This document shows, piece by piece, positions 16,573 through 25,606 of a DNA stretch of 64,000 nucleotides. Position numbers and translations under genes: made by a program. This DNA is from Epithemia pelagica (taxonomy: Eukaryota; Protista; Bacillariophyta), in assembly GCA_946965045.2 (NCBI GenBank), contig OX337228.1, positions 3,162,001-3,226,000 on the forward strand. Reading direction: 5' to 3'. How positions within the stretch are numbered: the stretch's first letter is position 1; each line of letters starts with the position of its first letter. Below the pieces are notes generated by a model that saw nothing but the letters and a program-made list of their open reading frames with translations, was not told the DNA's origin and did not search any database.

Positions 16573-16973
16573 AAACTCATGATGGTGAGGGTGTGAACGA
16601 AAACATAGCGATCAAGCTCAACAACATTTCGTTTGGTCGTTCGGCTACAAGCTACCTACCTCGAGACGCTCATTGTGGCATTGGTTGTACTATCGGGTGT
16701 TGGGATATTGGCCCTTATAAATCAATGGGGACTGCTCTGTGATCCCATTTACCAATGCTTAGATCCATCCGCTCTCCTCCAATAGGAGTAATTTAGAACA
16801 GCTTGTATTGTTTTTGTATTCTCTGGCGACAACTACCATATTTCTCGTAGACTCGTATTGTTAGCGATTTTGCTCATGGTTATGAACTCGGAAGCAGATC
16901 CTCCGTGCCACGGCCAGGCGATGGACTCTCAACCACTGAAAAGAAATATGATCACATTTTTTTGTTTTCCCTA

Positions 16974-19244
16974 ATGGAGTCAGTCACAAGAAGCCGGCAA
17001 GGAGCTGAATTCGCTCGTCCAAGACGTCCGAACCTTGATACTATCGCTTATCTGAAGTCCCTTCCGTTGGTCGACGATGTGGCTCGTAACGAAATTGCCG
17101 CGTTTTGCGATCGCCAGCAATGGAACGCAGACGGCTCACAAAGCCAGACAAGTCAGGGGTCGACCGAGTTTCCTGCTTCGCTAGCTGCTGCCTTGACCGC
17201 CTTGGAAGAGATCGGGCAAGAAGTTGCATCACTTGCAGGCGATGAGCGAGGTGCAGAAATGCTGGAAGTGTTGGTGAAGATCACTGCTCCATGTTCGATG
17301 ACTGCAGCCTACAAATGGTTGAGTGCATGCCGTGGCTACGCTCACCATCTTGCCCTTCACCGATATGGATCACATGTACTGCAAACTATTTTGGAGCAGT
17401 GCTTTCTCTCTTCGAATCCCACTTCACATAAATCTGATGGAATGGAACTTGACTTGGCGTTGCACTCCGAATCTCCTGTTTCACAGAGCGATCCGTCAGA
17501 CAATGATAACGAAAGGCGGGTCACCAAGGACGATCTGTGGGAAATTCTACAGGATTTGCAAGAAGAATTACTGCCAGCAGTTGGTCAATTGAATACCCAT
17601 ATGTGTGCCACACATGTCTTGCGAACACTCTTTTTCATTTTGGCGGGTATTGAATGTCATAGTCTCCAAGCTCCAAAGCCTCGACGAGGAAAACCAAAAT
17701 CTAAAAAGCATGGGAAGTTCTCTGCTCTAGGTAATGAGTCTGGATCAAGTGCAATAGGAAGCACAATACAGTATTTGAATCCAATGCATCGCCGACCGTC
17801 CAACAATGAAAAAGCAATCAAGTCCCTGGATAACTGGGCAGATACCTTTGCACCGAGCACAAATGGTGGGCGACCTGGTGAATTGCAGGAGCTCGCCTGC
17901 GACCCTTCAGGAGGGCCCCTTCTCATGGCATTGCTAAAGTCACTAACATACCGAGACAAAAGAAATACAGTCATCCTGCCCTCGGCAAAAGAAATCGATT
18001 CGTCTTTTCGGAGCTTGGGCAAATTACCAGATGAACCAAAATTTGAAAAGAATTCAAAAGCCTGTATGCTTACCACACGCATTCTTTGTTTGCAAGACGA
18101 GGAGGAGCAACATGCCAATACACAAGCAGAGAACGCTGTGTATGGATTGGCAGGGGACCCCCGAGGTTCTCATGTTTTGGATACGATTTTCCGCCTGTGC
18201 CACGATGAGATGCATACAGATATAGTTGACCTCGGAAAGTTTGTTTGCTCCATACAGGAGTACGTGGAGCATGATGTCAGCAACTTTGTAGTGCAAACCA
18301 TTTTAGCGACTGTACGCAGTCCAGATGTTGCTCAACGCTTCATCGACGCATGTGTGCCATTGATCGAATCTGGCTTGATTGTGGACGCTGCCAATCGACG
18401 ACGTGGTATTTTATGGAGGTTGTCTGAAATGGCAGTCAAACTAAATGTGGGACAAGCCGTGATACTTCAAAGTCTCCACCTGCAGTTTCATCGAAAGAAA
18501 TTAGCAGGACTGCTTTTAGATCCAAAGCGCAACTCGGAGAACGACAATCGTCTCTTATTGAATGTTGAAGGTTCAAGATCTCTCATGTATTTGCTGCAGT
18601 TTGATTGTCCCGGAGCCGACGAGGTAATCCACGGCGTTGTGGACATGTCTGTGGACGATCTCATGTCACTGGCTCGTGATGGATTGGGAAGTCGTTGTGT
18701 ATGGGACGCTTTGTTGAAGGGAGACCACGATGGGAACGACAAGGATGCGAACAAAACGGCGCCTTTGAAGAAGGTAAGAAATAAACTATTGACAAAACTC
18801 AAAGGTCGATGGACATCCCTGGCGATTGATCGGGTTGGGCATCATGTAGTCCGAAAACTTTTCCTTGCTCTTCCGACTATGAAAGCCCGAGAAGATCTGG
18901 TGAGAGAACTGGCTCAAGGGCGCGATCGCTTGCGTGGGAACGCAATGGGACGATGCGTTCAAAGCGAATGTGAGGTTGATCTATACTGGAACCAAGGTGT
19001 GGACGAATGGAAAGCAAAGATACAAAGGAAACTAGAGCAAAAGGAATGGCTGATGGAGCTTTCCTCCTCTGCTATCCATCCACAGAATGCATATCCCAAT
19101 GCAATGCAAGAGGGAGCAAAAACGTCATGCAAGAACGCAAAGTCTGCGACGAAGCGACCAACGGCTACTCTGACTGTTGATTATATTTTTGATGCTTTTA
19201 CACTTCCCAAGAAAGAGAGGAAAAAGCGGAGAAAGTCTGGCTAG
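16974..19244 (+). CDS. NOP9: Nucleolar protein 9 (Pumilio/PUF repeat)
   Basis: PUF-like repeats HRYGSHVLQTI, HMCATHVLRTL, DPRGSHVLDTI, HDVSNFVVQTIL, DRVGHHVVRKL; basic C-terminal tail. Confidence 0.85.
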   Translation: MESVTRSRQGAEFARPRRPNLDTIAYLKSLPLVDDVARNEIAAFCDRQQWNADGSQSQTSQGSTEFPASLAAALTALEEIGQEVASLAGDERGAEMLEVLVKITAPCSMTAAYKWLSACRGYAHHLALHRYGSHVLQTILEQCFLSSNPTSHKSDGMELDLALHSESPVSQSDPSDNDNERRVTKDDLWEILQDLQEELLPAVGQLNTHMCATHVLRTLFFILAGIECHSLQAPKPRRGKPKSKKHGKFSALGNESGSSAIGSTIQYLNPMHRRPSNNEKAIKSLDNWADTFAPSTNGGRPGELQELACDPSGGPLLMALLKSLTYRDKRNTVILPSAKEIDSSFRSLGKLPDEPKFEKNSKACMLTTRILCLQDEEEQHANTQAENAVYGLAGDPRGSHVLDTIFRLCHDEMHTDIVDLGKFVCSIQEYVEHDVSNFVVQTILATVRSPDVAQRFIDACVPLIESGLIVDAANRRRGILWRLSEMAVKLNVGQAVILQSLHLQFHRKKLAGLLLDPKRNSENDNRLLLNVEGSRSLMYLLQFDCPGADEVIHGVVDMSVDDLMSLARDGLGSRCVWDALLKGDHDGNDKDANKTAPLKKVRNKLLTKLKGRWTSLAIDRVGHHVVRKLFLALPTMKAREDLVRELAQGRDRLRGNAMGRCVQSECEVDLYWNQGVDEWKAKIQRKLEQKEWLMELSSSAIHPQNAYPNAMQEGAKTSCKNAKSATKRPTATLTVDYIFDAFTLPKKERKKRRKSG

Positions 19245-19920: not shown

Positions 19921-22628
19921 ATGGCGCCTTCGAAATTACCGATATTGTGTTCGCAAGCACCTTATGGTCAAGATTGCTGTTGCTGTCAAAGATGCGGCGT
20001 TGGAGGATGCGATGTTAAAGTGCTTCCATGTGGATGCTGCATGCACGCAGTACGTTCGCCCCTCATTTTGTTTATGTGATTGCCTTGTCTCATTGCTGAC
20101 TCGATGCTGTCTTTATTATTTGATGATGTTTAACGAATGTATTGATGCAGAGATGTTGCCCGCTCTCACAAACTAAATTGATAGAGATATGCCCAATATG
20201 CGGCGAACCAGCGACAGGTCTCCATTTGATTCCTCTTGCCTTTGATGAAATTGATCAGGCAACAGCAGAGGCCGCCCAAACAAGTCTCACTAACAAGCGT
20301 GGTAAAAAGAGACAAAATGCTACAGTTGCTCGTCTGAATCCATCTCTTCAGAATTTATCATCTTCAACTTCGGCCGTCAATGAAGAGGGGGCATCTGCGG
20401 CAGTTGGAGAATTGAGTGAACTACGAACTGGTCGGTGGACACCGGAAGAAACAGCGTATTGTGACAAACTTATTTACTGCTTCGAACAAGGGTATTTGCC
20501 CATACCGGACAAAATGAAGCTAAATGACTTCTTATCAACTATGCTCAAGAGTAAGCAATCCAGACTAACCAAGAAAATGAAGAATGCAAAACTTTCTGCT
20601 AAGCAGTACAAGCGCAATCATTCGGTGATCATGAGCGAAGAGGAGGCCCGAGAACTTTCGAAACTGGAGACGGATTTGTTTGCATCAATAAAGTGCCGTA
20701 TGGAGAGGTCAGAACTCCGATTTCACATGCAAAAGGTCTGGCGTGACATGTTCACTCATTTCTGTTCCACTATTGGCCAGAAGCTGGAGCTTGAAGGATG
20801 GCTGCGAAGTGTCGAACAGATGGAAAAGCGTACATCGGAGGCGATGAATGCCGCCCGAAGAGCTCGGAGAAAGGCAATGGTAGGATACGCGTTAAACGAA
20901 GATACGAAGAATGCTCAGAGTGGTGTGCTCATTGACCCGAACGTTCGTGTCGATCGAACAAGCAATGTTGTGTTTGATCAAGGCGGAGAGTACGGTGACG
21001 TTGGATCTGAATCTGACTCCGTTGGAAACTGCTCTAATAAGAGACCACGAACTAGTTCATCAGGTGCAACATCTCGAGCCCGGTCATCATCGTTTGTGGC
21101 TAGAGTGATGCATTATGTTCAAATGCGCCAGGTACCGTTTGAGCACGTGGACGTATGGGTTCCCTCGGCTGGAAGCAGTGTTGTTGGCGGTGATAGTAAT
21201 CAGGTGCAACGACTTGCCTATGGGGGATGCGCTACGGCAGACTCTAAGATTGTCCCACAGGCGTCTCGGTCGGCGCCCCTCACGACAAAGGAGCAATATG
21301 ATCTTGTTTCTTTTGGAGAGTACAGCCAACGGTTCTCCTTCAACGTCGGATGCGGTCTTCCTGGACGAGTGTTCAGCTCCGGAATCCCTTCCTGGGAACA
21401 AGGTATCAAAAGCGCTCCCTCGACGTTGTTTGAGCGTTGTGGTGGAGCGCGACAGTGGGGAGTCGAGACGGCCGTGGGAATGCCAGTCAGTAGCCCCTCT
21501 GTTGGACGAATTGTAGTCGTTCTGTACTCTATCTTTGACCGTCCACGAGACGAAGAAATGGTCGTTCGAATGACGGATGAGTTGTCAAGGTTGTTGCCAA
21601 TGCCGAGATGGAAGCTTGTCGTTGATGTTGGGGTGGATGTTGGGACCGACGCACCTTTTTCTGTAGATATGGCGACGAATGATTCGCGTGCGACTGACTT
21701 GAAAAGTCTTCTGCAAAGCCTCATGGGTAGCCATGATGGGTCTTCTCAGCAGATTGCAGGCCTTGGACCACTTTTTTGCATGCTTGCGAAAGAAAACTGT
21801 ACAAATGCTGAAAACGATCTTCTCCAAGATGCTTTACGGAATTATGAAAATTACAAGCGACAGGGGAGAGCAGACACTGAAGTTGCATGGTTGACCTGCC
21901 GTGACTTCTTACTGAAAGAAGCTCTCCTTAACAAAGTTGATGCAACCAAAGCACCAGCGCAGACAGGTGTCGGGCTTCCCATGAATGCACCTGTACCGGG
22001 AGCGGACAAAGTGTCGAATTCGTGTGGAAAGCTTTTAAACAATGGAGCTGTTTCGTCTGAAATTCAAAATAGCGACTGCTGTCCCGGAACAACTCAACAG
22101 TCCAATGGATGTTGTCCTCAGCCTGTTCAGCCGTCCAGTGGCTGTTGTCCTCAGCCTGTCCAACAGACTAGTGGATGTTGTCCACAACCGCTCCAACAGT
22201 CCAGTGGCTGTTGTCCATCTTCAAGGACGAACACGGCCCGTGGATGCTGCCCATCCCCCACTATTGCTTCTGGTTGTGCCAAGCTGCTGAACTCATGTGC
22301 GGCTTCCAGAGCATTCTGTACTGTACAGCAAAAGGGCTGCGTTGCAGATAGGGGCTGCGCACTCAATAACTCTTTAGCAGGTCGAATGGCAAGCGTCAAG
22401 GAAAGTGGGGGACACCAGGCACTCAATAGAGATCTATCAGTCCCAGACACGCTCGTTTTACCAACTGCCCTTGCGAACTTACAACAGGATGGGTCTAGTC
22501 TATATGGTCTTGATGACTCATCGGAGTTGGACGCCAGTGCCGTAATCAATGGAAGCATGGACTTGGGCTTGACGGCCGTGCAGCTAGCCCAACTTCTTCA
22601 GAGTGAAGCTGGTGCTTTTCATGGCTAA
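19921..22628 (+). CDS. RING finger + stramenopile Myb-like + NLP-type GAF protein, copy A, with Cys-Cys repeat tail; exons 19921-20049 and 20151-22628
   Basis: Intron 20050-20150 joins CQRCGVGGCDVKVLPCGCCMHA|RCCP...CPIC (RING-like); RTGRWTPEETAYCDKLI...LNDFL...KSKQSRLTKKMK; GAF-like FSFNVGCGLPGRVFSSGIPSWE. Confidence 0.8.
22101..22220 (+). repeat. 33-bp coding tandem repeat (about 3.6 units) encoding (S/T)(S/N)GCCPQP(V/L)Q(Q/P)
   Basis: Units start at 22101, 22134, 22167 and 22200 (partial); flanking degenerate CCP units at about 22076 and 22245. Confidence 0.9.
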
Positions 22629-22989
22629 AAGTATTTGTTGGATTACGTGCTTTCAAGAGTATAGTCAATTTGCGCGACAGTTTCTTTATTATGAAAGATC
22701 CATTCAATTGTATGTTTTTGTCGCAAGATTATAAGGCATCGCTCTGATTCAGGTCTACGAGAACATTGAAGATGGGGTTAGGAGAAACACCAACAGATAT
22801 CCTAACAAGCTAGTGGTCATTTAAATCTACAATACCCGAAAACGGGAGACCAGAAGGTACACCCCCTTTGGTTTTTTTTGTACATATCACGGGATGTTGT
22901 ATGCAAAACATAGGCATGAAATCAGAACGCAGAAAGCTGCGCCGTCCACCAGACCAGCCATAAACCTCCACTGCGACGGGAGTTCAGCT

Positions 22990-25606
22990 CTAAGAGTTAG
23001 AGACGACAGACATCGAATCGTTAGTTCCCGGAACCGGGATTGGAGCAAGAGCTGGCGAGTTCTGAAAGGTTGAGTTGGTGGACGGCAGACCAAAAACCGG
23101 AAAACCTGAGTTTGCTGTGTTTGATCCTTGAGATGGCGCCATAACACTGCCATCAATAGAAAGTTGGAGTTGCTGTTGTTGACTCATGAACAGAAAGTCA
23201 CGAGCGAGCATCACAGCAATATCCGATCTCTGTCTACCGTTAGCACTGTACGAGGAAAACGAATCAAGCATGGTTCTCACAATTTCGTGCTCCTCGCGTG
23301 ATTGGGACTGACGGAGAAGAAGTAAACGTAGCGACATAAATCCTGGTAGAAAAGGACCCCAGCTTGACTGAGCGTCCGACGGCATGAATTCCGCCAAGAT
23401 CGAGAGGACTTCATCGAGCCTTGGATCTCTCTTCGACTGAGTGGATAATCCAGCCACCGATGAGGATACCTCTGCCGGAGTTTCTGTAACTTCAGAAACC
23501 GACGATCCTGCATTCGGCCTGGTCCCTTCCTGTACTGCTCCTGATCCCTGCTCTGTTTTCTCTTGAGTGGCACCAGGTGTTGTCGTTGTCGCAGTCGAAG
23601 TAGTTGCCGATGAGCCCGCGTTAGTGGCTTGGACACTGGTCGATTCACTCTCGTCACCAATATCAACCACCAGCTTCCACTTCGGAGATGGCATAAGCTG
23701 CAACGAAAACTTAGTTAGAATTTTGGAAGCCATGAGAAAATGAATTGATCAGTTGGGACTTACCCTCGTGAATTCTTCTGAAAGACGCCCAACCAGCTCT
23801 TCATCTTTGGACCGATCTAGACATGAATAAAGAGTTACGACGATTCTACCGACGTTCGGGCTGGCAATGGGAATGCCAACAACCGTCTTCACTCCCCACT
23901 GCAATGCTCCGCCACATCTTTCGAAATGGTTGCTAGGGGCATTCTGTACGCTTTGTTCCCAAGTTGGACGACCGCTTTCGTAAACGCGTCCGGGAAGACC
24001 ACAACCGACATCGAACGAGAACTTTTGACTGTAGTCACCAAAAGTCATGAAGTTAAAGGTCTCTTCTGGAGAAATGGCTCTGCATTTGGAACCATCTTCT
24101 GGGACGACGCACTCCACAGTTGCGCTTCCAGCGTAGCACAAGCGGCAAACCGGATCCTGGTCACTGTTTCCACTGGGAACAAATGAAGGCACCCAGAGGT
24201 CTACATGCTCAAATGGAACATTGTGTCGCTGTATGTACGCAATCGCCTTGGAGAGGAACGGTGCCGAATGCAGGAGGCTGCTTTTCCCGTTCAGGTCCAC
24301 AGAATTATTGTTAGACTTCTCTTCGTTCAGAAAAGCTAGAATCTCATCCATCTCCCTGTCGTCACTTTCGGTATTCGTGAGAGCTGCACGTTCTTCTGCA
24401 ACTGTTTTCTCAATGAAAACACCCGAGTCAGGATTACGAGCATCCGTTCTGAGGGCAACACCCATCATCATCTTTCGTTTTGCCATACGTGCGGCATCTT
24501 TCGCCTTGGACGCCCTCCGGTCCATTTCCTCCACACTACTCAACCAGCTGTCTGCGTCGAGCGGTTGACCCAGGGAAGCACAAACGCGGCTGAATTGTTC
24601 ACGCCACTCTTTCTGCATGTGGAATTTAATCTCAGCGCGCTCCTGGAGATCTGTGATAGCTGTGAAAAAGGATTCCTCGAGCTCCGAAAATTGCCTGGCT
24701 TCTTCCACAGTGCCAAGACAACCCGTAGTTCGACGAAAACTTCTGCTCGAAAGCTTCGCGTTCTTCATCTTTTTCGTAAGACGAGACTGCTTCGACTTGA
24801 GCATGGCTCCAAGAAACTCGTTCAGCTTCACACCATCTAGTACAGGTAGCTCTCCGGTTCCAAATTTTGCGATCAGATTATCACAGAGAGTCATTTCCTC
24901 ATTTGTCCAGCGACCCGTGCGACGCTCCGATATGTAAGTTCCACTTTCTTCCATTTCCGACGGCGTCTTGCGCTTCCGTCCACGATTTTTGTCAGTGCCT
25001 GGTATAGCAGCGGGTCCTGCTTTGTGGGCATCATCGATCTCTCGAAATGACATGGGGAAAAGGACAAGGCCTTGGCATGCTTTCCCGCAGATAGTACAAG
25101 TTCTTAGAGGACCGGTAATGTCAAGTGGCAAACATCTCTGTCATAGAAGCATGAGTTATCGATAGTGTGTTAGAGATAAAGGGGGAACAGGCGGTATTTA
25201 TGCGAAAAAGCGAAACAGGCCGTACGATGGATCTTTAGCGACATCGACACCTTCCACCACACACTATAGTCTCATGTGCTATGACGTGAGAGAATGATCA
25301 AGGCAGTTCCGCTTTGGCAATGAGAAGAAGATCCTGTCCTTACTTGAGATGAAGGAAAACTAGCCGTACCACAATTGGGATCGGCATGCGTAGAATCTAC
25401 GTAGAACTCAGTACACGGCGTATCTTTCCGGAGGAGCCACTTACCGCATGGACTGTGCATCCACAACCGGAAACTCGAACATCACAGCCTCCAAAGCCGC
25501 ATTTGGCGCAACGAACGTATTCATCTCCGTCCATTGCCAACGAACTGAATGCGGCTTGGGGGATGTTGCCAAGCCCCAGGTCGAATGTCCCTAACGATGA
25601 CGCCAT
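22990..25606 (-). CDS. RING + Myb-like + NLP-type GAF protein, copy B; exons 25606-25445, 25137-23764, 23697-22990
   Basis: CAKCGFGGCDVRVSGCGCTVHA|RCLP...CTIC; RTGRWTNEE...KSKQSRLTKKMK; FSFDVGCGLPGRVYESG. GT-AG introns 25138-25444 and 23698-23763 keep the frame (EFTR|LMPSPKWKLVVD). The start could instead be ATG 25534. Confidence 0.8.

Follow-up and report, generated by a model that had tools for sequence, protein, structure and literature searches.

The 64,000-nucleotide stretch of Epithemia pelagica DNA analysed here (contig OX337228.1, positions 3,162,001 to 3,226,000; hereafter the window) contains a convergent, i.e., tail-to-tail, pair of spliced genes: gene A on the forward strand (19921-22628, one intron, predicted product of 868 amino acids (aa)) and gene B on the reverse strand (25606-22990, two introns, 747 aa). 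We read A and B as paralogs of ancient origin within a family of nuclear transcription regulators that occurs throughout the diatoms. This family is very probably the RGQ family of Phaeodactylum tricornutum, and we assign the reading as a whole a probability of about 0.7.

The assignment is based on domain content. RGQ stands for RING-GAF-Gln, and RGQ1 is reported to have come from a yeast one-hybrid screen and to be nuclear. An N-terminal RING-type finger, a GAF domain and a Gln-rich region, i.e., the features checked for RGQs, are all present in A and B, and in full-length orthologs finger, GAF and poly-Q are found on one chain. Judged from these sequence features, membership in the RGQ family is highly probable. 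Such membership implies that the combination of RING, GAF and Gln-rich tail is not undescribed. An earlier interpretation made from the nucleotide letters only (the sequence-only reading) could not match the architecture to any described system; it fits the Phaeodactylum family.

RGQs are named among the Phaeodactylum transcription factors that respond broadly, at the transcript level, to nitrogen (N) status (Smith et al. 2019, citing Matthijs et al.; PMC6779911). They are not among the highly nitrate-sensitive genes of that study, which could not name the nitrate regulator (PMC6779911). According to its title, Matthijs et al. (2016, Plant Physiol 170:489) deals with a RING-domain transcription factor of Phaeodactylum. 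Our literature search returned no accessible descriptive text on RGQs: citing papers quote the Matthijs title only, and the term 'RGQ' does not occur in the supplements of Smith et al. 2019.

Gene models, paralogy and conserved pairing

Gene A starts with an ATG at 19921 (+). Its exon 1 (19921-20049, 43 codons) encodes RING ligands 1-5 (C-x2-C...C-x-C-x2-H, from 19984) and ends ...C-M-H-A. A phase-0 intron of 101 nt with GT..AG borders (20050-20150) separates the RING His from the sixth ligand, and exon 2 (20151-22628, 825 codons plus stop) resumes in frame with R-C-C-P. Gene B starts with an ATG at 25606 (-). Here, exon 1 (25606-25445, 54 codons, RING ligands 1-5 from 25510) ends ...T-V-H-A and is followed by intron 1 (25444-25138, 307 nt, GT..AG) at the identical RING position, exon 2 (25137-23764, 458 codons), intron 2 (23763-23698, 66 nt, GT..AG) and exon 3 (23697-22990, 235 codons plus stop). 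The two stop codons are separated by a spacer of 361 bp (22629-22989), into which the 3' untranslated region of gene B extends at least to 22826 (RNA contig 22826-23373).

Both introns of gene B are real, since metatranscriptome contigs skip them. Two contigs of one metatranscriptome skip 25138-25444 exactly (joint 25137/25445; CT..AC on the + strand), one of which differs from the window at 1/171 bases. For intron 2, an RNA contig stops at 23698 and then runs on as the reverse complement of the exon 2 end, and orthologs read across the site as EEFTR followed directly by LMPSPKWKL. RNA-library contigs on gene A are found only at 21105-21286 and 22001-22289, i.e., outside its predicted intron, which is supported by its GT..AG sites, the reading frame and orthologs and not by reads. 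That is, the A-type gene model of Epithemia clementina is unbroken across the site (...C-L-H-A-R-C-C-P...), and A- and B-type genes show an exon break at the matching position in six other genomes. In addition, the N-terminus of the Entomoneis transcript P0004 matches gene B exon 1. The splice of exon 1 to exon 2 claimed by the sequence-only reading is thus borne out, for B by RNA and for A by the evidence just named. Since the intron between the finger His and the sixth ligand is common to A and B, it predates their duplication.

The 5' RING exon is absent from 3/8 named public gene models that we examined. These are the B-ortholog models of Fistulifera solaris (L003, 5295-7389), Pseudo-nitzschia multistriata (L005, 6001-8103) and Mayamaea (P0070), which begin inside exon 2. 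Using tblastn, the missed exon with RING ligands 1-5 was located upstream in F. solaris (L003, 4861-5007) and P. multistriata (L005, 5682-5858). This hidden first exon may be new, as we found no accessible text that mentions it.

For all homology searches, single exons of A and B or full-length orthologs were used as queries. Alignment of the exon 2 products of A and B gives 45% identity along 490 aa (E 3e-140). At E<=1e-3, 786 homologs were found for gene B. Identity to B is 61-82% in the top 120 of them, and every genus named there is a diatom (Epithemia, Entomoneis, Seminavis, Nitzschia, Fistulifera, Pseudo-nitzschia, Mayamaea, Asterionellopsis). For gene A, 563 homologs were found at the same threshold, with Attheya among the matches listed. 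Given these numbers, a chance origin is far excluded. The closest named relative among the matches listed is Epithemia clementina, with 82% identity for B (exon 2) and 73% for A (first 500 residues of exon 2). In a quick maximum-likelihood tree, the B-type sequences form a clade with short branches (Shimodaira-Hasegawa-like approximate likelihood ratio test support 99) that takes in Attheya (centric) and Asterionellopsis (araphid), and A-type sequences evolve faster. Tree and identity confirm what had been claimed before, i.e., that A and B are diverged paralogs, and show the divergence to be ancient.

The convergent arrangement is conserved as well. A and B are found tail-to-tail in 8/8 raphid pennate genomes examined, this genome included; the others are Nitzschia inconspicua, Seminavis robusta, Fistulifera solaris, Cylindrotheca closterium, Pseudo-nitzschia multistriata, Epithemia clementina (adjacent locus tags 016313/016314) and Nitzschia sp. 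Nitz4 (from coordinates in protein names). The spacer measures 258-361 bp in this genome and four others by gene calls (258-313 bp in those four) and about 1.1 kb in P. multistriata (tblastn). Because the pair is present in eight genomes, duplication and arrangement predate the radiation of raphid pennates. We did not meet this conserved convergent pair in the accessible texts, such that it may be new.

With regard to neighbouring genes, an acetyl-CoA carboxylase carboxyltransferase gene is located upstream of the B gene in three Bacillariales genomes (L001, L004, L005), and two of these three also have a D27-like gene on the far side of the A gene. Since these flanking genes recur, synteny reaches past the pair. 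In the window, the gene upstream of A encodes a NOP9-like PUF-repeat protein (16905-19244 (+), Pfam PUF_NOP9 E 4e-53), and no further copies of the A/B family are present within the 64 kb.

The RING-type finger

Each protein opens with the finger, which is interrupted at gene level by the phase-0 intron described above and completed by ligands 6-8 at 20151-20201 (+) in A and 25137-25087 (-) in B. Eight Cys/His residues (C9, C12, C24, C26, H29, C32, C44, C47) are invariant in 31/31 full-length members, giving the pattern C-x2-C-x11-C-x-C-x2-H-x2-C-x11/12-C-x2-C; an extra Cys within GGCD is replaced in 2/31. That is, the finger has RING spacing of C4HC3 type (ligand 4 Cys, ligand 5 His) and fits the RING consensus C-x2-C-x(9-39)-C-x(1-3)-[HC]-x(2-3)-[CH]-x2-C-x(4-48)-C-x2-C.

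When the family profile was compared with the PDB, the only consistent matches were RING ubiquitin ligases (E3s), aligned in register (Cbl E 0.009, BRE1, RNF13, Arkadia). The AlphaFold2 (AF2) model of the finger reaches a predicted local distance difference test score (pLDDT) of 92-96. Foldseek finds local resemblance to the RINGs of BIRC7, cIAP and IDOL with E-values short of significance, which is usual for a query of only 57 residues (for BIRC7, template modelling (TM) score 0.60 by target, prob 0.69, E 0.58). UniRef names the A-type orthologs 'RING-type domain-containing protein'. Pfam scans gave no RING match in the exons or in full-length orthologs; the distant member P0339 combines a RING_XB3-XBAT31 hit of 24.5 bits (below the 50-bit cut-off) with a bHLH-MYC_N hit of 44.4 bits (above 30.2). 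Given the invariant ligands, the PDB matches and the UniRef naming, we keep the RING-like finger proposed by the sequence-only reading.

Its proposed ubiquitin-ligase-type role is doubtful. The residues Ile383 and Trp408 of Cbl are contacts to the ubiquitin-conjugating enzyme (E2) at the Cbl-UbcH7 interface. The equivalent of Ile383 is Arg or Lys in 26/31 members and that of Trp408 is variable and polar, which renders a classical E2-recruiting E3 role uncertain. Going by this residue pattern, we regard any ubiquitin-ligase activity of A and B as doubtful. This also bears on the alternative that A and B are mainly RING E3s with a GAF sensor instead of DNA-binding factors. The canonical eight-ligand spacing, the Pro kept after ligand 7 in 26/31 members and the restriction of PDB profile matches to RING E3s agree with this alternative, in contrast to the missing E2 contacts, the basic patch and invariant basic helix, which suit a nuclear nucleic-acid binder, and the published family name 'transcription factors'. 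We consider it quite unlikely.

The three-helix and GAF-like domains

Besides the finger, both products share a basic patch, the segment RTGRWT..EE...KQSRLTKKMK and the motif GLPGRV. The short basic patch after the finger (KRGKKR in A, 20295-20312 (+); RGRKRK in B, 24984-24967 (-)) would direct the proteins to the nucleus. Next follow an almost invariant three-helix domain (GRWT-EE ... SKQSRLTKKMKNAKL; A 20421-20597 (+), B 24924-24748 (-)) and conserved long helices (A 20598-20900 (+), B 24747-24409 (-)), which together may serve DNA binding and oligomerisation. Within a 75-aa segment, 23/75 columns are invariant, R-L-T-K-K-M-K-N-A among them. AF2 predicts three helices (108-123, 134-141, 143-153) and subsequent long helices up to residue 262, with pLDDT values of 90-94 for helix 1 and about 65 for helices 2-3.

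The sequence-only reading had called this domain Myb-like, a label that fits the first-helix motif only and that we do not adopt. No Pfam Myb match was found in the exons or in full-length orthologs, and a PDB profile search with the three-helix segment aligned c-Myb helix 1 only (E 1.3). Fold searches with a 285-residue N-terminal model, in which the three-helix part is barely tested, gave no Myb either, and in the VIA-wide search with this model the long helix 224-267 outweighed all else, such that the search is uninformative on the domain. A feature search of the atlas with the segment yielded no usable match, and a word search with the 75-aa domain returned diatom fragments only, owing to its length window. 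A basic region as in bZIP factors was considered for the long helix and rejected from its sequence, since the invariant Asn and Arg as well as a zipper are missing.

The segment nevertheless represents a genuine domain family. In a profile search among 1.84 billion representative proteins, 1448 proteins with the three-helix domain were found at E<=1e-3, of which 306 pass E<=1e-10; the domain occupies many different positions, and the longest of the proteins reach 1310 aa. A 651-aa protein of the oomycete Lagenidium giganteum (P0342) contains three separate copies (residues 183-250, 337-405 and 469-522) of about 70 aa each (R-S/T-G-x-W-T-x-E-E ... L-R-x-F-L ... R-I-S-K-K-L) that match no Pfam family at E <= 0.001. 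An ESM Atlas shape search with the three-helix part also retrieved Oomycota clusters (TM 0.65 by target, 759 members). In proteins of the centric Thalassiosirales (P0345, P0348, P0366, P0318; 1058-1310 aa), the domain is located 350-600 residues farther from the N-terminus, and at least one of these proteins also has a GAF of bHLH-MYC_N type. The accurate label is a stramenopile-wide helical domain without Pfam match. This large family shared with oomycetes was not met in accessible texts and may be new.

The GAF-like domain covers 21087-21590 (+) in A (GLPGRV at 21354-21371) and 24267-23764 (-) in B (GLPGRV at 24000-23983). We modelled it with AF2 from residues 300-700 of the Epithemia B ortholog (P0002:300-700), which gave a confident alpha/beta core. 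The best neighbour found by VIA-align is the N-terminal JAZ-binding domain of MYC3 (Z 12.9, root mean square deviation 2.8 A over 136 residues, 20-22% identity; Foldseek E 1e-4), followed by EGL3 (Z 10.7) and generic GAF domains (Z 9-10.5, 5-13% identity), which make up many of the 544 chains at Z >= 5. At the level of the predicted model, the GAF fold is thus solidly confirmed.

The NLP (NIN-like protein) subtype claimed together with this fold is not supported. Among 38 members, Pfam reports bHLH-MYC_N in 38/38, GAF_2 in 18/38 and GAF_NLP (PF22922) in a single one (E 0.028). Bit scores for bHLH-MYC_N (PF14215; gathering score 30.2) are 29.0 for gene B, 22.7 for gene A and 30.5 for the ortholog P0004. 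The top match of a PDB profile search is EGL3 (E 7e-4), with an alignment that spans the motif F-x-F-x-x-G-x-G-(L/I)-P-G. Since the GxGLPG motif is thus shared with the bHLH-MYC family, GLPGRV is not an NLP-specific signature of nitrate sensing as had been assumed. The reported absence of RWP-RK and PB1 is correct: neither was found in Pfam scans of the A/B exons and full-length orthologs. In subtype, the domain resembles MYC-N and not NLP, an affinity of the diatom GAF that we did not meet in accessible texts and that may be new.

These results bear on the idea that A and B are NLP-like direct nitrate sensors, i.e., that nitrate binds to the GAF-like domain as in AtNLP7 or NreA and switches the regulator on. 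The fold itself (Foldseek, VIA-align) is compatible with it, and the Foldseek matches include a nitrate biosensor derived from NreA (9ncu, E 1.7e-3), yet the nearest structures MYC3 and EGL3 bind peptides and not nitrate. NLP clusters score 0.81 by language-model features, in contrast to the 1/38 vs 38/38 of the Pfam assignments and the lack of RWP-RK and PB1. The N-terminal GAF-like region of NLP7 is reported to bind nitrate (review PMC13766177) and RGQ transcripts respond to N status, but only broadly and outside the group of highly nitrate-sensitive genes (PMC6779911). Altogether, we judge direct nitrate sensing to be quite improbable.

A tentative and rather doubtful option is that the GAF is a protein-docking platform as in MYC2/3 and EGL3. 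That is, it would bind the peptide of a repressor or partner transcription factor, and the RING on the same chain would ubiquitinate the partner or the regulator itself. By both sequence and structure, it comes closest to the domains with which MYC3 and EGL3 bind JAZ and MYB proteins, although generic ligand-binding GAFs are just 2-3 Z units below MYC3. In the monomer model, the surface segment with the highest conservation shows poor order, which would suit a site that becomes folded when its partner binds, but low pLDDT may also reflect the shallow all-diatom alignment of 38 sequences. Furthermore, the RING does not retain the residues for E2 contact. In the transcription-regulator reading that we favour, the GAF-like domain of the plant bHLH-MYC-N/NLP subgroup would provide regulatory input via either a small ligand or a partner peptide.

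Downstream of the GAF-like domain, a PxWKLVVD motif (A 21591-21632 (+), B 23697-23656 (-)) and a disordered linker lead to a four-helix C-terminal domain (A 21681-21920 (+), B 23427-23182 (-)), for which AF2 reports pLDDT values of 91-98 over most of its length. The tail of B (Q-rich stretch and conserved end, 23181-22993 (-)) begins with QQQQLQ, and orthologs show longer poly-Q. The tail of A is Gln/Pro-rich and contains six evenly spaced GCCP units (22074-22277 (+); Q-rich GCCPQP repeats) that are 11-12 residues apart, and its last 225 residues include 18 Cys; the repeats are degenerate in the Epithemia A ortholog (CCPNSG, GCCMS, SCCAPS). The Q-rich (B) and Cys/Gln-rich (A) tails could act in transcriptional activation.

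Going further, the A/B pair might form a functional two-gene module, with heteromerisation via the long helices and/or coupling via overlapping 3' ends, with 'GRWT-EE...RLTKKMK' as an undescribed stramenopile-wide DNA-binding class and with a MYC-N-type GAF that gates the module via a peptide or metabolite. We consider this combination unlikely.

Family assignment and comparison with known systems

Some observations weigh against an assignment of A and B to a family of nuclear, DNA-binding RGQ regulators. No Phaeodactylum protein is among the best 120 matches of either the B or the A search. No Pfam RING match exceeds the gathering score, with zf-RING_2 in 11/31 members at a best E of 0.092. 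Concerning Myb/SANT, Pfam finds just one of 34 members (SANT_DAMP1_like, E 0.065), and DNA binding by the three-helix domain is our inference from its sequence. The most conserved GAF stretch (GLPGRV...WEQ...HFERCGGA; model residues 110-140) is the least confident one (pLDDT < 50), which points either to an element that forms upon binding or to the small depth of the alignment.

Nitrate use in the sea is dominated by diatoms, whose nitrogen-responsive transcription factors are, to our knowledge, barely characterised. The locus supplies clean, RNA-supported gene models for two putative RGQ-type regulators. The shift of the sensor's affinity from NLP-like to MYC-N-like alters which ligands or partners to test, and the three-helix family without Pfam match is a candidate for the likely DNA-binding part. 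Finally, the deeply conserved convergent gene order is a rare case in diatoms. The results sharpen work on an existing family and overturn nothing known.

Compared with canonical RING E3s (c-Cbl, BIRC7, Arkadia), the finger agrees in its eight zinc ligands at RING spacing, the Pro after ligand 7 and the in-register profile alignment. It differs in ligands 4/5 (Cys/His rather than His/Cys), in its very short loops (11 and 11-12 residues) and in basic or polar residues in place of the Ile and Trp E2 contacts. With plant NLPs (AtNLP7) and bacterial NreA, A and B have in common a related GAF-like sensor in a nitrogen-linked transcription regulator, i.e., a clan-level fold; unlike NLPs, they are devoid of RWP-RK and PB1, and GAF_NLP is found in 1/38 members only.

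The N-terminal domain of plant bHLH-MYC proteins (PF14215; JAZ-interacting in MYC2/MYC3, MYB-interacting in EGL3/GL3) is alike in its GAF-like fold, the F-x-F-x-x-G-x-G-(L/I)-P-G motif and a transcription regulator as host. In contrast to MYC/EGL3, A and B have no bHLH, and their domain is located mid-protein instead of N-terminally and shares the chain with a RING and with another kind of putative DNA-binding domain. The RGQs of Phaeodactylum tricornutum likewise form a diatom family that is N-responsive, is called transcription factors and combines an N-terminal RING with a GAF and, going by its name, a Gln-rich tail. A and B come from a different diatom, with Epithemia clementina as nearest named relative, and on this comparison are very probably additional members of a known, poorly characterised family.

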